DNA from: Klebsormidium nitens
Taxonomy: Eukaryota; Plantae; Klebsormidiophyceae
Length of the DNA: 64,000 nucleotides
NCBI GenBank assembly: GCA_000708835.1
Contig: DF237212.1
Location: forward strand, 54,734 to 118,733
Reading direction: 5' to 3'
The notes beneath the pieces were generated by a model that was not told where the DNA came from, did no database searches, and was given only the letters and a program-made list of their open reading frames with translations. Positions within the stretch are counted from its first letter, which is position 1. Every line of letters begins with the position of its first letter. The position numbers were made by a program, and so were the translations under genes. Positions 41,409 through 62,600 of the stretch are shown here, piece after piece.

Positions 41409-44400
41409 ATGGCTAGCAACGAGCATGCTCAACTGTTGGACAATCTGGACATGCTCGTGGCAGACGAGAAGAAGATAGTAAGCTGTCTCTCTTTCAAAAG
41501 CGCCTGAGGAACAAGCTGGTGCAGCAATGCCTGGCAATTTCAATGGGTTTCAAGAAGCTGCACTCACAGAAGTAGCCTCTGGACTTCTGGTATCTCGTAA
41601 TGCTGCCGGGGTTTCAATTTGGAGCTCGTGGAGTCTGTTCGTTTGGAACACTGAGAGCGCCAGTGGTTGTCGCATAGATCTCGAAGCACCGGCGCTCTCA
41701 TAGTTCCGAGCAGATCTCAAAGCACCGACGCTCTCATAGTTCCGAGTAGAAGTCAAAGCACCGGCCCTCTCATAGTTCTGAGATTTATGACTGTGCAGAG
41801 GTTGAGCGTCAGATTGATAAGTTTAGCATTCCCAGCTCACTTTCGCAGGAAAACTTTTGGACGGAGTGCTTCACAACATTCTCATGTCTTTAAGCATATC
41901 TTTTCCTGAATTCTCAGCGCCTTTGCTCATTTTGTCCAGGTGTCCTTTAAATGGCTCAGTCGAGCGTTCTCCCTCCCTTCAAATACTGCCAAAGAGTGAG
42001 CACATTCTGCTCAAGACCTCTTGAAAGGCTTGACTCCTTGCTACATATTATATATTTGAGCCACAATTGAAACATGCTATGTTGCACGAAGTGAATGCAT
42101 GAAGAGATTGGGATCCCCCACTGTACATGGAATATGCTTCTTATTTTGCCATTCAGCTCAACACATGATGCAGAATTGAGAAGCTCTTACGAGCAGCTTC
42201 CTCTGATCTTTGCATTTCTTTGCAGGGTCCTGAAGGCATATGCTGAGAAGAAGAAGGACGCAGTGAAGGTAGTGTACCTGGTGTCAGGTTGGACCCGCAA
42301 TGACTCACGTGCATTCTCCCTCCAGTTGGTCGGGCCAAGTAGCCTCGAAGGTAAGCCCCAGTCGGTCTCGTCAGCTCAACCTGGTTATGCAGGTGTGTCT
42401 GCAGAGGCAGTCGCGGGGGTGTCTGCCTGCAGAGTTTCTTGGAAGTATAAAAAACTTTCAGGAACTTTTCGGACTTTCTTCTCAAATGTTTGTTGTAGTG
42501 AAGCAGATTCTGTGGGAACAAAAGTGTAGTGCTGCGAACCTGCGGATTGTGGCTATGCACTGAACTGTGCGGGTGTGCAGGGGCCTTGGCAAACTTGGAC
42601 GAGGCATCGTCCCATGTCTACAGCGTACAGCCGTCCATTCCCAAGGACCCAGCTGCTCTTTGGACCCCGGACTTTATCCAGGCAGAGGAGCTGTTCAACC
42701 GGCCGCCAGAGGAGGATAACTGTTTGCGGAATAACAGGTAAGGACGAGGACAAGGTCACTGATGAACAGCTCAAGCTCATCTCATGAACCAGCGATGTCT
42801 CAATGGTGTTATCAGAGGTCTTTTGGAGTTATACTGTGGCGTTCTGGTGCCCGTCTTTGTGATGCAACTTTCTCGAGAGTTAAGTACAGGAGGTCATTTG
42901 CTTCAATCTATCCTCTCCTCTGCAGCTTGAGTGGTGTGGTGTTGACGAACGTCAAATGCAACCCGGGAGGCAGGCGGAGGGCTGCTCCGCCCCCCTCGAA
43001 TGCTGGCGAGGGAGCGCTCAAGCCAGTCGTTCCAAAGGGCACAGCCGAGAAACCTGCGACGCCCCCCGCCAGTCCCGTTGTCAAAACCGAGGAGGTTGAA
43101 GCCGCAGCGCCCAAAGCTGCGAAGCTGGGGGCAGCCCCGAAGGCAGGGCCGGCAACTGGGGCAAAGGGAACGAAATCGAAAGCGGCACCGGCAAAAGGGG
43201 GCCTGGCGAACCTGTGGGGCAAGGCGCCCCCCAAAACAAAGGCCGCTGCTGCAAAAGTAGAGGAGGTGGGGGGCGTCAGGGGGGGTGATGCTGAGGCCCG
43301 CATTCGAGTGATGGAAGAGGCGGAGGGGGGGCAAAGCAGTGGGGAAGAGGAGGAAGAGTTGGCCCCCCGGGGGCGGGCAGGGCGGCGGAGACGGGTGGCG
43401 CTTGACGAGGAGGAAGAAGAGGATGACGGGGGCTCTGAGGGGGCTAATGGCGGTGACGTTGCGATGGAAGATGCGGAGGCGGCCGACCAGGGGGCTGACG
43501 TCGTCATGCGTGAAAGCGAGGAGCCCGAAGCGGGGGCGGCGGAAGAAGCGGAGGCGATGGATGCAGTTGATTTGAATGAGACGACACCTCCCGAGGAACA
43601 CTTGGAAGTGAAGCCGCCAGTTGCTGGGGTCGGGGGTCGAGGGGCTGCTGCGAAACGAAGAAAGATTGCGAGGAGCACTTTTGATGAGAGGGGAAGAGAA
43701 GGTGCGGCCTCCCAACTGGCTTCGATTCGCCTATGTTGCTTCAAGTCAAAGCTGCATCTGTAACTGTCATGCTGTTCTCGTTGGAGGCCGAACTGACGTT
43801 CGTGGATTCCAGATGCTCTGGCTGTTCTGGTCAAATTCAGCGGACGGTTTCCGTGAGTTCTTAGGGGGTTCAAGGAGGCAACCGCTGATACTTCGAGGCA
43901 ACATTTTCGCTTTCAAAGAGTGCATGGCGTTAGCATTCTATTTGCATAGTCATCCTTTGAATGAGCATTATAGTTGACAAGTTCCTCGCAATCCAGTCTT
44001 GAAATCAAAAGCTTATCGTCGACCTTGTGGCAGTCGTCGAAATGGTTTGGGAGGACGAGCTGGGAGGCGAAGGAGCGGAAGCAGTTGCTGACGTTGCCCC
44101 AGAGCCCATCAAAGCGGAACCAAGGTAGGTCTGCACGAGAGTGCTGTTTCTTTGACTGGAATCGGCATGCGCGAGCAGAGCCAAACCTGCGAATCGGGTT
44201 TGACGCTGCATGGTCTGCGTTGGTCGGAGTATCTTTGCTGAGTCTCACAGGCGATCATGGCACGGTCACCCAATCACAGAAGATTCACCCGACGTTGATG
44301 TATGTGCGTCATTCGCTCCCATTAAGAACGTCCACACGTAAAGGATTTCGAGTCTTTTCAAACCCCTTAAGGACACTAGTTGGCGCGATCTTATGATGCA

Positions 44401-49241: not shown

Positions 49242-51549
49242 CCAGATGCAGAGAAAGAAGGTCGGAAGCATGATGTTCATCGAGAAGGCTCGAGGGGGAA
49301 AAGGATCTTATTTTGCGAGGCTTTTGTCCTGTTCAACGTTATCCTTTGAGTGGCGCCATGGCGTTTGGAGCGACTAGGCCAGTGCAGCGCGCGTTGATCT
49401 GCTTATATTGGTCGGTGGATCTAATTTCGTTGGACTTTGGGCGGTTACATGATGGATACTGCAAGATACGATTTAGGCCCCGTAACATGAGCCGTGCACC
49501 CCTAAAAAAGTATGCAAGGAGATCAAGCGTTTGTCTATCCATACGACCAAGGGAAACCTAGGTCAATAATGGAATCTGCAACCCTAATTATCATAACCAG
49601 TGCTAGGATATAGCTCTGAGAGTTCCATGGCAGATTGCATGCAGGGCTGCACAGGCCGCAGTTTGCTTCTAGCATGGTCCGTACATCGATCAAAAAGCCC
49701 ATGTAAGTGCACTACTTGAGACCTCTTCAGGTGACGGCTGCGATCCTCTGTTGGGCCTAATGAGCAAACATATCTGACATCTTACTAATATATATCAAGC
49801 TTGCGTGTGTGTCACGAATTTCCGCTCCGGCCAGAATAAACGTTTCGGCGAGAGGCCGTTTCAGGGCATATGAAGTAATGCTCCGAACGGCTTGCAAAAA
49901 TAGCAGGCAACGACCAGAGGGCCGCCCCTGCAAGTGTGTTCGGTATTGGGTATTAGCACAGCAAGCCGTCCCTAGACGGTCATTGACTTGCTGACTCTCC
50001 CTGACTCAGGACGAGTTAGCAAACCCGGATGCCCTCTAGAGACTTTATAAGCAGACTCGTTCTGCACTCTCTGTGGGTTAAATGGTAACAGGTTGAGCCG
50101 AGCCGGCACGTCGACGCACAGCCTGGCAATGCTCCGATACGACCGTTACCAGTCCCGGGTTAGCTTATTCACACCGTCAATGTACGGTACCCCGGAAGGC
50201 CTCGCAATAAAATTGCGCCCGGCCGGCCATGACTACATGCTGAGTCACTGACGTCACTCTACGGGAAGGGTTTTGGAACCAAACCCTGCGTAACGCTGTA
50301 ACGCAACGGCGTCGGCTTCAACACCGCGCTCCACGTGTCGGTTGGTTGATCCGACGGACAGCGATAGAATCCTCGCTGATCGAAACGTGGCCCAGTGCTA
50401 CTTCAGCTCCATGTTCTTCTCGGCACCCCTCACCAATATTCTGCGAAGGGAAGACTTAAGAAGCTCACGAAAGCATGGTCTTCGAAAGGGGACGGGTAAC
50501 TTAATCAAAAATCGGCCGCCACAAGGGGCACCTCATACAACTTAGGCTTCTTCCTGATCTTTCAAGCATCATATGGACTATATGAAGGCCGGGCGCTAGC
50601 CTGCACGCAGCCCCTCAGTTACACATAGTTGATATAACAACCCTGAAGCGCAGTGGAGACTTCTAGTAAGCACGAGCGTTCCAATGGCATTCATTCAACT
50701 TGGTACTCTTTTGGGCCCTCTTGAATGGTCAACGGTGTCCGAGGCGGCATATGCAAGCGTCGATGCATGATTGAACGACTTCGAAGAATTTTTCCAATCA
50801 GGGCTGGCAGGTTGCAGGTGAATGGAGTGCCGAAGTGGCGGCGATCGACACGCTGATCAAGTCTCATACCAAGTGATATACGCCCTGATGAGGTGTAGCA
50901 TGCAGAGGAATCATATGCTAGACATGCTGCTTCGCTGTCAGTGATTGCTCCATAACTATATTGATAGAACGTTCTTTTATGAAGCCCTAGCTCCGGAATT
51001 GCTTGTCTCTGCGCCATGAGCCCAGGTGCCTAAGCGTGTATAGAAAGATGTGACCATCAACTGATCGGAGCCAAGAAGTTCACGAGACTCAGGTGAAATG
51101 GCTTAGTCCGATCCCTCTTGATCAAGCCGTGCATGACTCCACAATATGCAGGATTCCACGACAACTCAAGAAAAGCTATCAGCTGCTCTCAAACTTAGAT
51201 CCGTGGGCTGATCGGACAGCCACAAGTCTGATGTTGATGGTCATTAGTACTTGCCAGCGATCGGCGGCAAATAGTTAGCACCCTATCCTGTTGCAGTGGC
51301 CCTTCCTAGCTTCCTACGGGAGTCCCAGTTGTGCAGTCCTATCACACTATTGCGTTTCTTCCATCCGTCGATTAGTGCCGTTCAAACCAGCTTGGACGAC
51401 ATCTGTTGTGACGTTCCATCGTATGCTGCCACGCCCTGCCTATCCACCAGTACCGTCGTTTCTTTCAATCTGGCTGTTGGTCATTCTTACAGCGCACTGG
51501 CTTCCTCATCAAATCTTTTAGAAAATAATTCCTATCGCTATAACAGTGC

Positions 51550-54500
51550 TCAAACCTCGGACTTGACCAGAGGGCTGTGCAGTCCGGTGGATGGCCGTGC
51601 CCTGTTCCGCAGGGAGACGACCAGCCAGACGAGGCACGCGGGAAGCAGAGCGTACTTAGCCACCATACCGATGGAAGCGAGCGACAGCCCAACCGATGCC
51701 AGGGCGGAGCCGAGCCATGTGCGCGGCGTGATCAGGGTCTCGTCAGCCCACAAGCGGAGACCAGCTGCAAGGTAGAGATTTGGGGAATAAGCAAACACTG
51801 AACGCCAATCCAATTATTGATTCAAAAGAAAGACAGAATAACACGTAATGATGCTCGCCAGCCATTGTAGCGAGTCCTTTGACGATCAAAGCACTTTCGT
51901 TTCTGGCAGAGCGTGAAAAGGTTCCCGAGTTTCTTGAAGTTCCAAGTGCTTGGGCACGGGATATAGCTTACATGTTGCCCTCGCGCAATAGGATATGAGA
52001 GGATCTCGTGGACAGACTTGAGATCGAATGAAGTTAGAGAAGCGGTGACGACGGTGCGATTCGAGTTGCTCACCATGGGGCTCAAGCTCCGCGGGAACGC
52101 CCGCGGCCGCTGCCGTGACGTCGACGTCGGCCTGCAGGGGCGCGCCCTGGTACTCGACCGCCAGCGCGGAGAGGCTGCCCTTGCCCGAGCGGGTCGCCTG
52201 GAAGAGCGGAGTGACGCCCGTGAAGGTGTACATGACGGCGTCGAACTCGGCGCCCGCGGGCAGGGGCCCGTCCCGGACCACCACCGCGCAGCTGTGCGCG
52301 CCCGTGCGCGCGGAGAAGCTCGGCTCGCGCTCGGCGGAGTTGCCGCCGACTGCAGAAAGGCGGAAAGGAATAAAGTCAAGACGTGAAGCCAGGCCAAGTT
52401 CACCGGAAGAGTTTAGTATCAATCAGGAACATGCTGGAGCACAACGGAGGCCAACGTCTTTGACTGTCCAGCGACTGGTTCCATGAACGCAGAAGAGGAA
52501 ACCGCGTGCAACGCAGAAGCGTCTCGACGATTCCTAAAGCTGGATGGCGTATATCAACATTTGCGTAGGATGCCAAGCCTGCGCCCGTCTCACCTTTAGC
52601 GGCGACGAGCGTGAGCACGGACCGCTGTGCGGCGAGGCCGGCCATGCCGGAGCGCTGGGTGCGCAGCGTGGCGCGCCCGACGAGCGCGGGCAGCACCAGC
52701 AGCTGCGCGAGCACGCCCTCGTCGCGCTCCGCGTGCAGGCACTTGGCGCGCGCCTCCTCCGCGATCAGCACGTTGTTCAGGATGCTGACGGCGCACTGGG
52801 AAAGGGCAGGTAATTTTGTCAGAGGGAGTAGTGTGGGCAAGACTGCATGAGTCTGATGGACGTTGCTGACAATCGACGTAGGCCAGGCGCCTATGAAGGG
52901 CGGAACGTTCAGCGGCAAGAAAGGCTGCAATACTACGCGTGCGTTCAGTAATCTAGATTGGGTCAGAGACGCATGAATTGTTTCAAATGCGATCAGTAAA
53001 AAGCACGTATTCTGAGTCCCTTCTTCTTGACGAAGTTGGCATTTCGTTTCGCGAAACTCACGTCGGCGGTGCTGATGTCCGCAACAGCTGCCGTGTCGGC
53101 CTTGAGAGACGCCTTGAAGGACGCCTCAATGAACGCAAGGATGTCTTCGCTGGAAGTCCACGTGGCAGCCGGGACGGCCGTGACGTCGACCAGGGAGCAA
53201 ATAGCGGAGTGGAGATGGACAGTCGAAACAGCCGGCTGGGAGCTGAGCTCGGCGACCTTGTGAGAAAGGGCGGCGCGCATGGTCTCGATGGAGCCTGCAT
53301 CAGAGCGGAGGTAAAGGGTGAGGCTTGGGAGCGACAGGCGTGGTTATCTTCACAGTCAATGTACCTGCACAATGCGTTGTCGAAGATGGAGAAAAGTGTC
53401 AAGTTGCACATAGCAATCACTTGCGTTCCCCTCCAATTACGAAGGTCACTACAAATTTCTATATCCAAAAGAAGGGTTGTTCCGTCATAGCCTGAGCCTA
53501 GATTCTCAAGCCGTGTGTAGAGACTTCTCTGACTTGGAACAGAGCCCGATTGCACTACATTATTGTTCTCATTCAGGACGTCGAGGAGCCACTTCCACCC
53601 ACCATCGACGGTGCAGAGCTTGTCGGCGCCCTTCATCCCCAGGCCCCGCGTGTACCGCAGCGCTTTGCCCACGTCAGCGGACCGGATGGCCCAGACGAGG
53701 TCCTGGAAGCTCTGGCTCGCGGGCGCGGCCGCCATGTCGTCCGCGGCCTTGATCGCGGCCGCGTGGCCCGACACGCCCTCCAGAACGAGCCGCATCTCCT
53801 CCTCGATCTCCGCCCGTTCGCTCTGCTCCGCCGCGTCAACAGACTCCGCGTGGCCCGACAGGCCCTCCCCAATGGCCGCCTCCTCAGCCGCAATCTCCTC
53901 CTCTTCCGTCAGCTCAGCGCTCTCCTCAGTGGCGCCCGAAAGGCCCTCTCCGATCTCCTGCGCCTCCGCTCGGATCTCGTCCAGTTCGCTGCCCTCTCCG
54001 GACAGTCCCTCGCCGATCGCCGCCTCCTCGGACGCAATGTCGTCCGCGACCAGGCCCTCGAGCGCGCCGGAGATGCCCTCGCCGATCTCGTTCTCCTCCC
54101 GCGCGATTTCGGCGGCTTCAGAGACGGCCTCCGAGACGAGGGAGCGCCGGCGGCGGTGCTGTTGCTGGTGCTGGGCGGAGCTCAGCTTGAGCTTCGAGAA
54201 ACCGCGGGTGACGTCACCGGAGAGGCCCTCGCCGATGGACGCGGCATCGGCGGCGATCTCGTCCTGCTCGGCGCTCGGGTTGGCTGCGGGCAGAAGGGAA
54301 ACAGAGGCTTTAGTGTTGCGTCAGCAAGCGGAGCATGCTTTTTGTTATGGTGCTTGCACAGGGAAATGGAAGAGACTTGAGAAAGTGATTCTGTACGAAG
54401 AAGGCGTGTTTGGGGATGTTTTTGGATGGCAACGGAAAGGTCATCACTCGAGGGAAGGCGACTGACAAGAACGAAACGGTAGAACAAGTTTCCTTTTTGT

Positions 54501-57043
54501 GCTGGCCAACTTGCGTCCCTTTGACGCTTTTTGAACGCCGTTCAGGTTGATCTGTTAGGTGATTAGGTAGACAAACGAGAGACTCTGTCTTACCTGATTC
54601 CACGCTGCCTTCGTAGAAGACGCAGTTGTCCACGGAGAAGGGAAGGTACGTGAACTTGGCGTCAGTGGTGGCTCCGTAGAGCTCGGCGTTTGCTGCAAAG
54701 GGCACCGTATAGACAAATGAGCAAGATACTTCAGATCTCTATGTCAGAAGCAAATTGCACTTCGTCTCTCGTCGATCAGAGTTGCTGTGAGAATCTTCTG
54801 AAATCGTCGCACAGACAGGACTCCAGGAGCACGTTGGATGACGTCACTCACCGGTATACGTGAAAGTGGGCCCAGCCACTGAGAAGTTGACGCCATCGGG
54901 ACTGATCCTGACAACAACACGTTCGCTGCCCATCTGCAGCGCAAGAATCAGCGGAGACTATCGGATTGGGGGCGGAGAACGGATTGCGATCCGATCACCT
55001 TAGGTAGTTTGCTACTTGAACTTTGCAAGCATGGCCATAACATTTGGAAGGCGGTCTGTCCATGGAAGCTGTTTCAGAAGAGGAGCCTAGCTCGGCCAGT
55101 GTTGGCATCGACGTGCGCACCTGGGGTGGCACGGTGCAGGTGATCATTGTCGGTCCTTCCCCGCTCTCAGGTGGTGTAACAGTGGAGGCCTTGAAAGCGA
55201 GATCGCCGAACCTGCATGTGTGGGAGCAAGCCCTTAGGCGAGAGAGATTGCAAGCGACGCAAACTAATTATATGCACACCAAGAGCTTCCATCGGGGTCT
55301 GGCAGAGTTGATCGAGACGAACTCCTAGCAGCTACTTGGAGAACGGTCTTAGACGGCAGAAAATGATGTTCCCCTCCTTACTTGCAGAAGAAGGTCGTAT
55401 GGTCCTCAGGGATTGAACCAGCCAGGCCGATGGTGACCTGCGTGTGGCCAGCGGAAGGACCGTACTCGGGCGAGATGGCAAAAGCGCACACATCTGGAAA
55501 AGAGAGCGTTGATTGATTAGTTCTGTGTCTTAGTTCTTGATGTCCCACGAATGAATGTCGCTGATTGTTCGTTGAGGGCTGATGAGAATAAGCGCGTTAT
55601 AAGACCATCTCTAAAGCGCTCAAATCAATCACGGGCTCCACATGAGCTTTGGATATCACGTGACAGTGCGAATGCCTCCTCCTTTCAGTAAAAGCGATCT
55701 GAGGGAAACATTTGTGTGCTCAAAGCAGACTAAGCGATGAAGGAGGGTTCAGAAATCGGAAGCGAGCCTTGAAAGAATGTACACTCACCGAAGTCTTTTG
55801 CCGGCTTTGAGCCGAGCCCCTGCTGCAACAAGCTGCTCTCCTCTGTGAAGAGAAGCTCGTCGTCCTCCATGGTCTTCCGGCCGTGAGCTCCATAAAAGCC
55901 ACCCCCATAGAAGCTGGTATCTACAGCACTCGTGGTCCTGTGACAGAGGTGACAATGCAAGGGTGGGCTTCTTGCAACCAATGAAGTAGCTCTGGAAGAT
56001 GCGAGTCCACTTAGCCATCAATTGCATCGACAAACTGTGCAGTCTAAGCTGGCTCCCAGATTGATACGAAAGCTTTACACAAGCACCGCAACGTATATTT
56101 GCTGGGAAGATACTCACGTCATCATGTCCGCGTCCGAGTCGAGCAACTCTCTGTGGAGTCCAAGGAGCTCCTCCTCAACACTGCCAGAGCTGCAGTGGAG
56201 GTGAATATTCGTTGGTCAGAAGGCTTCTTTTGAACCCTGCTCGGAAGACCTGTTCCCTGCTTGCATCCTGCTACTGGTTTTGCAGCACTGAAGATCCTCA
56301 CGGCAGAACTGACACCCTACGAACACAATCTGGACCTGATCTTTCCCTTGTCATCGATCCAATTGCTTGATCTTGCGCTATGTTACCACACTGCTTTTTC
56401 AGGGTGCTGACACTATCCAACTCACCTTCCGTCAAAGCCAAACAGGCGCCGGCTGGCTGCCTTGGCTGGCTTGGCTGCATACAAGGTGGTGAAGGTGGAG
56501 CTGTCTGCTGAGAACTGCTCGCCATCCAGGGAGACAGTCACTGTGGCAACTCCCACATCAAGAAGAGGAGCACGGCACAAGATCCGTGCTGCACTTGCTG
56601 GCGTAGCTGGAACATACTCTCCATCAACAACCTCGGAGTCGAACCTGCACTTTGCAGGGAGCTCGGTAGAATCCACGACCAGTGTATCCTCCTGCATACA
56701 GAAGAGAGAGTCAAGTTTGAAGAAATTGTGAAAAGGATGAGCTTCCATCAAGACAGTGCTCAAAGCTGCTCAAGTAGATCAGGTTAGGATCGTTCCATAC
56801 TCGTTGCGAGAAAGTTGGGAGAAATGGTCAGAAGCTTATGCGTACCTCAAACCTTGATCTCTTCAGCATTTCTGCTGTGACTCCTTTCAAGGGCATTGTG
56901 CCCGGCGCTAGATGAATGCTGATTAGTGTTCCATCCCCTTGTTCGCCCACGCTTGGGGAAACTATTGAAATGCCAGGAAGCCCTGCACTGCATACGACCA
57001 AGCAGCTCACAAGCAACGCTGAGAGGACGATGGCTCGAGCCAT
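51550..57043 (-). CDS. Uncharacterised type-I membrane protein (13 exons, roughly 900 aa): signal peptide, two IPT/TIG-like domains, acidic repeat block, unknown domain, C-terminal TM
   Basis: All 12 introns join GT-AG in compatible phase. Signal MARAIVLSALLVSCLVVCSA; IPT-like 'CRF..EVVDG...ILCRAP...VTVSLDGEQFS...FT' and 'ISPEYGPSAGHTQVTI...FCKFGD...ITCTVP...VRISPDGVNFS...FTYT'; TM YALLPACLVWLVVSL followed by a short tail. Several exons are strongly GC3-biased. Confidence 0.85.
53760..54270 (-). repeat. Six coding repeats of consensus E-I-x-x-E-x-x-x-I-G-E-G-L-S-G
   Basis: DEIAADAASIGEGLSG, AEIAREENEIGEGISG, DDIASEEAAIGEGLSG, DEIRAEAQEIGEGLSG, EEIAAEEAAIGEGLSG, AEIEEEMRLVLEGVSG. Confidence 0.9.
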
Positions 57044-59613
57044 CCTTGCAAAGCACAACTGTCTCAGAAGCGCGCTTCCCCCGGAATTTCCGTTACAGGG
57101 CTATGGCAGCAGTATGCGGTGCTCTCCAAGTCCCCGTAGGACCAAGACGCATGAGCCTCCCTTTTGGTCAACTGCGCTCCTCTCTGTGGTAAAACACCTG
57201 CCTGGAGGGTATCTTTCTTCTTCTTCCAGATTCAATCGCGACCCCTTTTCGGCAAAGTTGTACAAGACAGATTGACCGAGCTGCAGGAGCTGGCTACCAA
57301 TGAAAGCTGAGCTAAGAACAGGGCTGATTGAAGAGCCTGGGCATTCCAGAGCTCAAGATCACCAGCAAGCTTTTCCTTTGAACCTGGTATGGATGGTGCT
57401 CAGCTCGCTTGAACTGCAGAAACTGCAAGCTCAACGGCAGCCCGCCACAAAAGAGCTGCCCGACAATGACATTGACGGCCTGTGCCCGCAAATGCCGCGG
57501 TTTACACCACTTTGGGACGTCACGGCTCAGCTGTTGAGTGTGATTGCCGGGTGACTGCCACTTATCAAGTTTATTTGGGCTCTCAACAGTTGATGTTGCA
57601 GCAATGCAATTCAGTTTGTCGTTTTCAGCTCGTACACAGGAACAGCAATGTCGGCCGGCTTCCGCCACGAATGAAGTACTGCATGGTGCACCCGGACAAA
57701 ATTCAATATTTTGGTGATGCAGGAAACGGCAAACCTAACATCTGCCATCAGTGTAATAAGTGCCAGAAACTTGGCGAGGCTCAGGCGTGGCAGAGCAGCT
57801 CTACCATATTAAAAGGCACAAGCCTTAGTCCCTCAAGAAGTCAAAAAGATACGGGTTGAAAGCCGTAGCATGGTTCCAATCGCCGACTGTATTGACATAG
57901 ACAAGCCGGAGCACCTCAACGAAGATATTAACCGACTATATTCATGTATTACGCGATCTGCAACCGCACATCTAAACCCCACTTTACTCCATCCATCCCC
58001 CGGGTGCTCAACTTGACCCAACCGGCTCTAAGAAGTCCATCACGACTTACCAGAGGTCCCTGAAGGCTGAGTCTAGGTAGTATTTACCTACGCAAGATCG
58101 GAAGTTGAGCCTGCAACAGCAACTGGGCGGCTCGCGGCCAGCAGACGGCCGCTGCCAGCGGCGGACATTCATACCTATGATGGTACGGTACCTCCAAGAC
58201 CCGTTTCACTTGCATGCACAGGTATTAGTGGTAGCAATCTCAAGTGCTGCCACCGGAAGTGACAGTTGCGCGCGATCGAATCCTAGAAGCTGGATCGAAC
58301 CGTCCAATCCGAGCAGAGGCTATTCGAAAACCGTAGATGTCGCACTCCGTCCATGCTGACGTCAAGTCTCAGTAGGTTTCTGGTGTTCAGCCTGCCGAAT
58401 CTTAGTGACTTTGTGAAAGCTAAATATTTCCGAACTTAGCGTGAGGCTGCTGCATCAGCATTAGTCACCCTCTTCGGTGCTAGCATACTTAGTCGCGTTG
58501 CCAGGCCGAACCAAAGACTCAGTGTCGGACGAACTCAAACTGAATCGCAAACTCAGCTAGGACAACCATGCGCGGCTTGTCAAGCGTAAGAGTTCAAAGT
58601 CCAGCTAGGAAAAGTTTTAAAGCGATCGAGTATCAAACCACGATCCCCGTCCATGACCGCTACGTGAACATCAAATGGTGACATACTCAACCTGGCATGT
58701 GCTAGACCAAAAGAAACCATCGAAGGTTCAGTACTAGCATGAGAGCTAGTCATGAGATAGAGCTAGTTTTCGACCTCCAACCGCACTTGGTACGTCCGGC
58801 CATGCATATATGCCAGTAGTATACGGTACGATATGTAAATCCTTATATTCTGTGCGATGTCGATCGGCAATTCCATGTGCATGCACCGGCGGCGCAACAG
58901 ATCGCACATGCTGAATGCTGTATGACTTTGACCGCTCGATCGCAATTGGGTTTCATTCCGATCGCACACTAGTTTCATTATGTGTGGTTGACAAAAAATA
59001 ATTGCTGCCACCTTACAAATGACACATTGCTGATTGTTTTCCCTGCATGATGCATATTCATGCGACGGTATAGACGAGGTGCATTTGAAGAAAGTCTTTT
59101 TGCTTATATGCTGGATATCAATCCAATTAACTAGCAGTTAGCTTATATGTGTCAAGGTCCGATCATGCTGCAAACAAAAATTGTAGTGCATTCCGACGAA
59201 AAACCGTTTGGCTCTGAATGTGCCATACCATGGAATTCTCTAAGAGGTCTGCTCAGACGTGCGCTCCGAAGCAGCGGTCTTTGGGGGTCAAAGAAATCTG
59301 AAAGCTTCAACTCAATTGCCGTTCCCAAACCAATATATTTGCATGACATCCCCAATACGCAATAGCTCGTGGAAACCCCTGAATGCACGATCAAAAGGAA
59401 CGGTGACAACTGGTGGCCTATCAAGCCTCACACTTTTTCTTGACCGGGGGCTGCCCAAACGCAAACCGCAATTGATCAAAGAGCAATCACAGCCGCCTTT
59501 TTCTGGTCTAGGCTTAGCTAGGCTGAAGCCTGCTTGACCCGGTGAATGAACTCGTTTATGCTAGCGGAAAAGCAAAGAGTGCGCGCTTCAATCCACCTAT
59601 CGAAGACCCCGTA

Positions 59614-62600
59614 TTATTGAGAACCGCTACTTCTTTGACTAGTAAAGAGCTGTACGGTTTTGTAAGTCCACTTGTCGATCATGCCTGCACGCTCAAAACA
59701 AAGGAGTCAGGCAGGAAGATATGAGAGCATGGTCATTTTCGATTCGATGCGCGGCACAAGAGGCCAAACAGGTTTCGCAATGTTCGTGCAGGTGAGATAC
59801 GGTCTCTCGAATGTGGATGGACCTTGTCAATTGGTCCTTTGACTCACCAGTGACTGCAAAGGTGCCCCCCAACACAGCGCAGATCCGAGTAAGGAAGTGG
59901 CCGAAGTTCCTCCGTCTTTCGGTGACTTTGACAGCAATGGGAGAAAGATCGTACAGAAAGTAGACAGCTGTAACCCGAACAGAAGAACAGTGTGTGTCAG
60001 CAACAGCAGTTTTTGCGGGCTTCAGGAACGACTTCAGTCGCAATCCAAAGAGGACTGTCCGTCGGAAAGGCACGTGCTGGGTTGGAACCTATTGCACAGA
60101 TCTTCTGTACATATTTGGCAAGCGACTGTGCATGACGTCGTTTGTTAACGCCCTTAGATTACTCCTTGTAAGGTCAAGCCTCACTGTACCGCCACGACAT
60201 ACCTAAGCATCTCAGTTGAACGATGAACCGATCTTTGAAGCTGCTACGACCTCCCTCGTCTGATCATACTAGAGAACGCTCCCGATCATATCCAGCTATC
60301 CACCGTGGAACCCCAACTTGAAGTGCTGCTCATTGAGAAACCAGTCTGCTAAACCCTTATCCTTAACCAACTTTGAATGAAGATACGTCCAAGCAGAGGA
60401 CAAAGCTTAGTTCAACAGAGCAACCGACGCGCCTCATCGGCATGCTGAATCTACTCAATACTTGTAACCACTCTAACGCTCTTTCCCTCCAAAGCTTCAA
60501 ATCAATCCAGGCAACACCGGCTTCCTAGCTGGCAACTCAGCGGCTTTGAAGATTCAGGACCTTGAAGGATGCTCAGTGCACTCGTTTTACCTGGAAGGCC
60601 CCCCGGTTGCATGGATGATGGCATGAAATACTCCGTGACGGAGTACTGGTTGGTTTCCACATGATCGCCTTTAAGAGGGAAGTACTCTGTCGGGACAACC
60701 TGCAGCAGATCGGCATGACAACTGATGAGGAAGGGCTGGAGTGAAAGATGTCTCACAACTCCAAAGGTCGTTGCAGTCTCGGACGAATGTATGTCGAGCA
60801 GGGTTTGCAGGAGTATCGTGAAAGAATGGCTATACTTTCGCAAGAGCAGAAGCGTAGAACCGATTGGACCTTCTCAAAACGAATATCTTTTCGAGGAAGA
60901 GCAACATGACAGTTGCTGCACTTAGGAAACGGACGCTTTCATGCTTCCTTCCGATCACGGCTTACTTTCACAGCCTCCGCTGTCAAAACTGAGTAGCCCC
61001 CTGAGATTGACGTCAACCCTTACCTTGATGAAGTACTTGAAAGTGCCGCTCTCTTGTTCTGTCTTTAGAATCCTGGTGTAACCATCCAAGGGGTTCGTGG
61101 TCCCAGGAATTGGAGGCCCAAAAGATACAGACTCAATGTGATGGCTGACGTTTACTGTGCTCGCACTTGCAAATACCTGCGAGATAAGAGACCCTTCTTC
61201 AGCAACAGAGGAAGACACGACATCGGAACATCCGCTTGGCCCTGAGCGAATCTTTCGTGGACTACTACCCTGTACCTACGAAACATTTAGAGACAAGCAG
61301 CACGGTACTCACAACTGACGTCGCAATCTTTACTTGCTACGGAATGCAAGCAAGATTACAAACTGAGTATGATGCTCACGTTGGTGACTTACCTGTCCCA
61401 GCACATAGTAGCTTTGCCCATGGACACTGATGTGGAAGTTGCCTGCGACTCGCTCCACGTCCAGGTGCCCATATACCTGCAAACGAACTCCACATCTTTT
61501 CTACCTGGCTGTAAACTTTTTGTCGACAAACCAGATGCAAGACCTCAAATCAAACCCAGGAGGGGGACCAGGTCGATGAGGAAGGAATAACAACATTGTC
61601 CCATACGGTCACAGGAGCGCCGAAAGAACCGATTCTTCACGTAAACCCATGACTGTCAAGCAGAGAAGCTGTTCGAATGAGATCTACAGTAGGCACGGCC
61701 ACACTTCGACTCACCCTGCAGCCCTCCTGATTGGCCAACGCAGCCTTGATGTCTTCTACCTGCTTGTTCGCGTCTGCTTGAGCAGCCCGACGAGCGTTGG
61801 CCAACGCAAAATCATGCTCAGTGGTATCTTCTGCGTGCGCCTCATTGTGAGCAGTATCGTCAGCATGGTCCAGCTTGTCAACCTGCTGCCAGATGCCAGG
61901 CCGGCCTTGGGAGTCCAGGCGGGCCTGTACGGAGCACATGGAACCACTTCTCACCAGCCACAATGAAAGCAAGCCAAACATGGCACATCATCTAGAATGA
62001 ACAGCAGCAAGAAGCCTGTGCTAGATCATATTGGGGATGAAAGAGCAACAGCCACTGACCATGTCTGCGGCTGCAGACACGGGGCTACTGATCAACAAAG
62101 GCGCTCTCTGAGTCTTACCTTCCAGATATTGTTGCTGATGTCTACTTCATGTTTGCCAGACATGTCGAGGGCATCCAAACTCAAAACTGCACCAACAGGA
62201 CGGCACTGCCGACATCAGCCAGCTTAAGGATTCCTGCAGCTTGAAACACCCCACTCCCATCCACCGAGAGCAAGATAAGCAGCGCAGGTGCGCCCAAAGA
62301 GCGAGCACACCTGAATCTCTTTATACATATGCCCCAAGGAGTGCACCTGGATCTGTTTCATCAATAAGCTACGAACAATTGGATGTCATCCAATGGGGTG
62401 TTAGTGCTAACCTGAGCAAGGTAAGGATGGGAAAGTGATGTTGATGTGGATAGGTAGCTTTTCCCGTCCTTTCACGTCAACGGTCATCTGCAGGCAAACA
62501 AAGCACATAAGCTGATTACTCTGCTGACAATCTCCTACATACACAGAACCCTCCTGCCATACATAGAGTCTGATGCCAACTGGTGATGCTTGAGAAGAGC

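Follow-up and report, generated by a model that had tools for sequence, protein, structure and literature searches.

An orphan gene of Klebsormidium nitens for a predicted type I membrane protein with IPT/TIG-like domains and an acidic repeat

Gene structure and transcripts

A coding gene of 13 exons lies on the minus strand of the 64,000-nucleotide stretch of Klebsormidium nitens DNA analyzed here (the window), running from 57043 to 51553 with its stop codon at 51552-51550. Rebuilt from the sequence, it reproduces exactly the limits that an earlier note on this DNA had given for a complete gene. Reconstruction of the open reading frame from the ATG at 57043 yields a product of 891 amino acids, and all 12 introns are bounded by canonical GT-AG. 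The exons are as follows.

57043-56846, 56691-56426, 56189-56118, 55937-55789, 55493-55382; minus strand; exons 1-5
55211-55121, 54933-54852, 54692-54594, 54283-53603; minus strand; exons 6-9
53294-53062, 52795-52594, 52349-52074, 51764-51550; minus strand; exons 10-13, with the stop in exon 13

The earlier note had suggested checking the splicing by RNA-seq, and transcript contigs (four runs of one study) indeed join exons across 11 of the 12 introns, skipping each at the exact model boundaries. The non-obvious donor of intron 9, GTGGGT, is among the sites confirmed by these spliced contigs. Intron 11 (52350-52593) is without a bridging contig; it is the sole GT-AG solution that preserves the frame, and its splice sites are kept in two orthologous loci, L001 and L002. 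The gene and the features observed in it are real.

Strong GC3 bias, previously read as consistent with high expression, is present in exons 9, 11 and 12 (0.88-0.96, versus 0.52 in exon 1). The inference of high expression is not supported, however: the transcripts are short fragments at a contig depth of 2-7, and of the 24 runs listed, four contain them, these four belonging to a single study.

Predicted architecture of the product

The spliced reading frame contains the layout that had been described for it, namely a signal peptide, two Ig-like domains, a six-copy acidic repeat, a Cys region, a transmembrane (TM) helix and a short tail. Database searches and structure prediction were run exon by exon, and the joined 891-residue model was used in local scripts. 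The principal features are listed below with the evidence used to delimit them.

56984..57043; minus strand; signal peptide, aa 1-20 (KD19 up to 2.5; kept in L001 and L002)
56479..56974; minus strand; IPT/TIG-like domain 1, aa 24-137, exons 1-2 (Pfam TIG, invasin, hhalign)
55790..56478; minus strand; linker, aa 138-228, end of exon 2 plus exons 3 and 4 (three-way alignment)
54691..55789; minus strand; IPT/TIG-like domain 2, aa 229-324, exons 5-8 (exon 5 alignment, conservation, periodicity)
53748..54281; minus strand; acidic repeat region, aa 358-535 (repeat counts, alignment, AF2, periodicity)
54263-54216, 54113-54066, 54044-53997; minus strand; repeat cores 1-3
53981-53934, 53900-53853, 53813-53766; minus strand; repeat cores 4-6, core 6 degenerate
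54144..54155; minus strand; RRRR, aa 400-403, in QHRRRR(S/A)LV between repeats 1 and 2 (invariant in four orthologs)
51736..53747; minus strand; juxtamembrane region, aa 536-830, end of exon 9 to start of exon 13 (Pfam, PDB, AF2)
51607..51717; minus strand; hydrophobic stretch, aa 837-873 (KD19 1.4-2.0; strongly conserved)
51553..51606; minus strand; tail, aa 874-891, 18 residues (ortholog alignment)

Hydropathy peaks are confined to residues 1-33 and 837-873. The predicted signal peptide has a basic n-region, a hydrophobic core and a small-residue CSA/G context at which it would be cleaved. Near the C terminus, hydropathy separates a small-residue-rich amphipathic segment (residues 837-851) from a predicted TM helix (852-873), and the tail that follows is basic at its start, with RNRAR directly after the helix, as the positive-inside rule expects. 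A type I single-pass protein is therefore predicted, with the signal peptide at its N terminus, one TM helix near the C terminus and a basic flank on the cytosolic side. The tail ends in an invariant KSEV-COOH, and the terminal codons are GAG GTT TGA in both L001 and L002. KSEV resembles a PDZ ligand of class I, or else an ER-export signal of the C-terminal-Val type, and may act as either. There is one N-glycosylation sequon, which is not conserved in the orthologs and counts against the surface protein proposed below.

The earlier note had assigned IPT/TIG domains to the N-terminal half. Two Ig-like domains are retained here, but statistical significance at the level of single exons is not reached. 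Exon 2 alone matches the second half of the Pfam TIG model (PF01833) with an E-value of 0.056 and 13.9 bits, against a gathering cut-off of 20.9 bits, and domain 1 matches an invasin Ig-like domain with an E-value of 0.046 in a PDB profile search, below significance at the exon level. Exon 5 aligns with the first strand of three plexin-A1 IPT domains and one MET IPT domain (E ~0.6, not significant), and exons 5-7 are individually too short to be scored against Pfam TIG. The assignment never becomes significant because each domain is split across exons and was scored exon by exon. The two domains align with each other in hhalign (E 0.003), and the patterns 'ISP..GP..GGT.(V/L)TI' and 'C..P....V.V..DG..FS...FTY' are visible in both. 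Domain 1 carries an insertion of ~25 residues and a conserved pair, Cys81/Cys105; domain 2 has its hydrophobic periodicity peak at 165 degrees, as for beta structure. An IPT/TIG identity is thus plausible for both domains. The linker between them gives no Pfam match.

The acidic region contains 21% Glu and has a net charge of −33. Its unit spans 16 residues, (D/E)(D/E)I-x6-IGEG(L/I)SG. Where six EIxxExxxIGEGLSG repeats had been counted, we find five copies and a sixth, degenerate one ending in LEGVSG. The string IGEGL was observed four times, whereas in 2000 composition-preserving shuffles no 5-mer exceeded two occurrences. Synonymous differences separate the copies, which are therefore held at the protein level. 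Recent tandem duplication of the DNA was ruled out by these codon differences and by TRF, which reported no array. AF2 draws long helices through the copies with modest confidence (pLDDT 65), and the hydrophobic periodicity of the region peaks at 105 degrees (z 2.6). The model keeps the helix unbroken at the motif, contrary to the suggestion that helices are capped by GEGLSG turns, although three Gly within seven residues count against such unbroken helices. The claim that the repeat belongs to no recognized family stands: exon 9, which encodes it, has no Pfam match and nothing significant in a PDB profile search, and a single ortholog fragment was recovered among the representative proteins searched (see below).

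Between repeats 1 and 2, RRRR(S/A)LV is a candidate site for a furin/kexin-type (RXRR) or S1P-type (RXXL) protease, as judged from its motif. The juxtamembrane region of ~295 residues has five invariant Cys (580, 616, 662, 680 and 749) and matches no Pfam family. PDB profile searches with exons 10 and 11 gave no significant match, hhalign detected no relation between exons 12 and 2, and inspection by eye for SEA, GPS, ZP and FAS1 motifs, as known in general, found none in residues 536-830.

Conservation and lineage range

Three orthologous loci (L001, L002 and L003) have exons collinear with the gene, and all three keep its exon structure; two of the three are syntenic. Whole-gene dN/dS is 0.17-0.20. 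Conservation of the protein is highest in domain 2, where exons 5-6 match L001 at 100% identity and L002 at 93-94%. Linker exon 4, in which an acidic stretch comes after an aromatic Gly motif, is also conserved (dN/dS 0.02-0.08), and linker exon 3 differs in length among the orthologs. All 11 ectodomain Cys are invariant in a three-way ortholog alignment. The repeat cores, the RRRR site and KSEV show no change in any ortholog spanning them, and GEGxSG is invariant across the six copies in four orthologs.

Searches for more distant relatives returned little. The window holds no paralogs of the gene. An exhaustive HMMER search of 1.84 billion representative proteins with an exon 9 profile had one match, the ortholog fragment P0002, and word searches with exon 9 and with an exon 12 profile yielded nothing beyond the ortholog open reading frame fragments P0001-P0004. 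Metagenome scans with exons 12 and 11 gave no matches, feature searches of the ESM Atlas (exons 12 and 9) led to nothing usable, and Pfam searches with ten exons gave sub-threshold matches at most. The literature held nothing relevant on the repeat motif or on Klebsormidium together with TIG. As far as searched, the protein appears restricted to the Klebsormidium-type lineage, the search with C-terminal exons 11 and 12 having covered metagenomes rather than annotated full-length eukaryotic proteins. Since the acidic repeat and the Cys-containing stalk are without detectable relatives, they may be new protein modules.

Proposed working and alternative explanations

The gene is a genuine, expressed one of the Klebsormidium type and under purifying selection, and the chances appear roughly even that its product is a lineage-restricted type I single-pass protein that works as follows. 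Its signal peptide would be cleaved on entry into the secretory pathway. Two disulfide-bearing IPT/TIG-like domains would form the binding module farthest from the membrane, an arrangement known from other E-set surface receptors, and the acidic, largely helical repeat region would serve as an extended charged spacer whose motifs suggest that it could bind basic wall components or cations such as Ca2+. Closest to the membrane, the Cys-containing region would be a stalk. A Golgi subtilisin-type convertase may cut once at RRRR(S/A)LV, splitting the IPT fragment from the membrane-anchored remainder, and the TM segment with its KSEV tail may direct trafficking or bind a partner. A surface location is suggested by motifs, and we read the product as a type I protein of the surface or the secretory pathway that is confined to its lineage.

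If this is true, an early-diverging filamentous streptophyte alga possesses a lineage-restricted surface protein that is a candidate for a role in attachment to the cell wall, in holding filaments together or in environmental sensing; the alga's group serves studies of plants' move onto land. The interpretation offered earlier is partly supported, and its description of the locus as an undescribed system was overstated; there is one lineage-restricted orphan membrane protein, partner genes are not in evidence, and the gain is a modest one in annotation. A bolder version of the proposal is unlikely in our judgment. It would make the 16-residue IGEG(L/I)SG unit an undescribed extracellular module, either a helix that binds cations or wall polymers or an acidic Ser-Gly site of glycan attachment. 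The module would belong to a membrane-to-wall linker specific to Klebsormidium, which a single convertase cut would mature and which would aid filament cell adhesion or life on land.

The lone basic site bears on whether the protein is instead a polypeptide precursor from which acidic IGEGLSG units are excised as repeated signaling peptides. Secretory-pathway entry, five to six near-identical units and one invariant polybasic site would suit such a precursor, which we nevertheless hold to be quite improbable. RRRR is the only basic cluster in the array, and processing sites flanking each unit, the mark of a multi-copy peptide precursor, are missing: no basic or other conserved cleavage site stands beside individual units, and the residues after them are D, A, E, A or H. 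A Gly-basic amidation context is absent, neither the length nor the sequence of the spacers is constant from species to species, the units are embedded in predicted long helices that span copies, and the flanking domains are conserved at least as strongly as the repeats. The earlier idea of a processed precursor thus keeps some support from the single invariant site, and release of repeated peptides does not. Least probable of all, and very much so, is a C-terminal ankyrin domain, which would make the protein an intracellular membrane-tethered regulator with TIG and ANK modules, as in CAMTA or NF-kB p100. The exon 12 profile matches ankyrin (ankyrin-1/2) and DARPin chains through a GxTPL...GA-type stretch, with a summed E-value of 5.7e-5, but this sums many weak repeat matches, single repeats having i-E values of at least 17 and the best single stretch 17-22. 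An ankyrin fold in exon 12 was rejected because no Pfam Ank family appears at E-values up to 10 in three orthologs and AF2 models it as beta strands, though with low confidence (pLDDT 42). The region also has conserved Cys, and CG-1, RHD and IQ elements are absent. The signal peptide is canonical and therefore places residues 536-830 in the lumen, which likewise argues against an ankyrin regulator.

Two further explanations concern where and when a membrane protein of this kind would act. It is rather unlikely that the protein sits in an internal membrane (ER, Golgi or vacuole) with its acidic region as a lumenal Ca2+ buffer; the net charge of −33 on the lumenal segment, the scarcity of glycosylation sites and the short conserved cytosolic tail, with its possible sorting signal, are in keeping with this. 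Against it, KKXX and H/KDEL-type retrieval motifs are absent, C-terminal Val is more often an export signal, and IPT domains that carry disulfides and stand in tandem typify surface receptors. There is a slim chance that the protein serves in gamete or cell-cell adhesion, like GEX2/FUS1, and is expressed at a special stage only. Ig-like E-set domains are present, the best PDB sequence match is to invasin, a type of fold reportedly first noted in FUS1, and transcripts come from one listed study only. Yet there are just two Ig-like domains here, the acidic repeat and C-terminal region are without counterpart in GEX2/FUS1, and missing word matches in other runs are not evidence of silence.

Known systems share parts of the proposed surface protein's layout. 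Plexins, MET and RON have a signal peptide, extracellular tandem IPT/TIG-type domains and a single TM helix, the layout predicted here, but the algal protein lacks Sema, PSI and a cytoplasmic kinase or GAP, ends in an 18-residue tail and alone has the acidic repeat; the exon 5 alignment to them is, as noted, not significant. GEX2 and FUS1, compared by architecture, are also short-tailed type I proteins of the green lineage and contain Ig-like E-set domains, although they have more of these domains and neither the acidic repeat nor the stalk domain. The TIG-then-ANK order of CAMTA and NF-kB p100-p105 may find an echo in the exon 12 PDB matches (ANK being unconfirmed), whereas a signal peptide and TM helix are present here and a DNA-binding domain is absent.

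Fibrocystin and PKHD1-like TIG-array membrane proteins also occur in green algae. Their TIG ectodomain contains a polybasic proprotein-convertase site, and with a single TM helix and a short cytoplasmic tail they resemble the layout proposed here; fibrocystins differ in their length of several thousand residues, their G8/PbH1 modules and their numerous copies of TIG, nothing of which is seen here, and no sequence relation was detected. Membrane mucins such as MUC1, with its SEA domain, have Ser/Thr/Pro-rich repeats, unlike the acidic and predicted helical ones here, where neither a SEA match nor a GSVVV-type site was found. By analogy of architecture only, they share with the algal protein the same order of modules and a possibly cleaved ectodomain.

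Gene structure, transcripts and conservation

Three-frame translation of the minus strand, combined with a search for GT-AG junctions that preserve the frame, leads to a single solution of 13 exons encoding 891 amino acids. Its limits and exon number are identical to those claimed in the earlier note.

51550-57043, minus strand: subject gene, from translation and GT-AG junctions; ATG at 57043, last codon at 51553, stop codon at 51552-51550

Transcript contigs from four runs of one study, carrying the same species label, were compared with the region 51400-57200. They skip 11 of the 12 introns exactly at the model positions (their CT..AC ends correspond to minus-strand GT..AG), including intron 9 with its weak-looking GTGGGT donor. 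No contig bridges intron 11, whose splice sites are canonical and kept in orthologs. Two further contigs, one inside intron 8 (54434-54582) and one extending exon 1 into intron 1 (56788-56845), carry no strand and probably represent unspliced pre-mRNA or intron retention.

Word searches matched two open reading frame fragments with exon 9 and two more with exon 12, and three contigs carry orthologous loci:

L001: Logan assembly, ortholog contig
L002: JGI metagenome, ortholog contig
L003: ENA assembly, ortholog contig, exons 9-13 only

Exon order and splice sites are the same across these contigs, and all 14.7 kb of L001 can be aligned to the window, including introns and neighbours. Over the whole gene, dN/dS comes to 0.17 (L001) and 0.20 (L002); by exon, 5 and 6 hardly vary, and constraint is most relaxed in exon 10 and in the repeat-bearing exon 9. 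Collinear orthologs and these low ratios indicate that the gene is real and that purifying selection acts over its full extent.

GC3 climbs along the gene from ∼0.52-0.56 in exons 1 and 2 to 0.88-0.96 in exons 9, 11 and 12, with extremes of 0.52 in exon 1 and 0.96 in exon 11. All introns have a GC content of 0.43-0.56 and the gradient, which is kept in both full-length orthologs (L001 and L002), is exon-specific and therefore not a regional GC effect. The GC3 bias described previously is real. Its reading as a mark of high expression is unsupported, as nothing in the transcript data points that way. Contigs over the gene in the four runs are short, with a depth of 2-7, and the gene's words are next to absent from 20 other listed runs with the same species label, an absence that is not proof of silence.

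Protein layout and candidate domains

Layout of the 891-residue predicted protein (amino acids)
1-20: signal-peptide-like
24-137: Ig-like domain 1, containing an insertion
138-228: linker; exon 3 variable in length, exon 4 well conserved
229-324: Ig-like domain 2, with ∼33 conserved residues extending beyond it
358-535: acidic region holding the repeats; 21% Glu, net charge -33
536-830: C-terminal region with five invariant Cys
837-851: small-residue-rich segment
852-873: predicted transmembrane helix
874-891: tail with RNRAR-like start and KSEV end

This layout is most likely that of a type I protein in the secretory pathway or at the cell surface, which would be built from four functional parts. 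Farthest from the membrane, two IPT-like domains would serve in binding; next would come a long, acidic, helical spacer, for which cations or basic components of the wall may be ligands, and then a stalk with disulfides. The conserved transmembrane segment and tail would make up the fourth part. The protein can be read as a lineage-restricted variant on the theme of single-pass surface proteins with IPT domains, in which the acidic repeat is apparently new. Overall, what the earlier note observed is confirmed, and its interpretation is supported in part only.

Domain and fold searches were run on single exons, and the joined model was analysed in local scripts only. Pfam TIG matches exon 2 at a sub-threshold E of 0.056, an invasin Ig-like domain is matched at 0.046, and exon 5 aligns with the first strands of the plexin-A1 and MET IPT domains (E ∼0.6). 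Domains 1 and 2 match each other at 0.003, and the hydrophobic periodicity of domain 2 is that of beta structure. The evidence for IPT/TIG-like folds is consistent across tests, yet sub-threshold.

Exons 10 and 11 have no relatives in PDB or Pfam, and metagenomes scanned for exons 11 and 12 gave no match. An exon 12 profile does match ankyrin repeats, at E 5.7e-5 when all matches are summed. We do not accept an ankyrin reading because that value adds up many weak matches to 24-repeat proteins (i-E is 17-22 for the best single stretch), no Ank family comes up in Pfam, AF2 gives strands (though at a pLDDT of 42), and the region carries invariant Cys and lies behind a signal peptide.

The KSEV terminus (51553-51564) is invariant in every ortholog that covers the gene end, and is similar either to a class I PDZ ligand or to an ER-export signal that ends in valine. 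The whole protein has one N-x-S/T sequon, which is absent from L001.

The acidic repeat and its lineage

The repeat unit comprises 16 residues, (D/E)(D/E)I-x6-IGEG(L/I)SG, in five copies plus a degenerate sixth ending in LEGVSG; L002 has one additional degenerate unit. GEGxSG is unchanged in all copies of four orthologs, and the spacers between copies show indels among orthologs. Since copies differ in synonymous codons and TRF finds no tandem DNA array, the repetition is old and maintained at the protein level. AF2 (three sequences, pLDDT 65) predicts long helices that span the repeats and, where the C-terminal region starts, a helix-turn-helix; hydrophobic periodicity in the repeat region peaks at 105 degrees (z 2.6).

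The suggestion that the repeats are released as peptides fails its defining test, since the units lack flanking processing sites. A single maturation cut is plausible: an invariant RRRR(S/A)LV site lies between copies 1 and 2, and its RRRR(S/A)L agrees with both the furin/kexin-type RX(K/R)R and the S1P-type RXXL consensus sequences.

PDB and Atlas searches yielded no relatives for the repeat exon. A HMMER profile built from three orthologs matched just one of 1.84 billion representative proteins, P0002, which is the fragment from L002. The protein annotated in the genome itself was not matched, so that either the collection lacks this gene or it covers the lineage thinly. Restriction to Klebsormidium-like algae is, on sequence searches, well supported for the repeat and provisional for the rest of the protein, because the search free of a length limit covered exon 9 only and exon-sized word-search queries are blind to full-length annotated eukaryotic proteins.

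Neighbouring loci

Three nearby open reading frames or exon sets were noted:

59693-61981, minus strand: upstream same-strand neighbour whose exons match Pfam COPIIcoated_ERV (E 9.6e-12 and 5e-4), an ERV41/46-type ER vesicle transporter
42762-43763, plus strand: 333-residue open reading frame; DNA polymerase subunit Cdc27 is a weak Pfam match that stays below threshold (E 0.007)
L003 3709-3927, minus strand: open reading frame downstream of the partial ortholog, with a precomputed Pfam WSC domain match

The region of the 333-residue frame is syntenic with L001, and the COPIIcoated_ERV neighbour adjoins the ortholog in L002 too.
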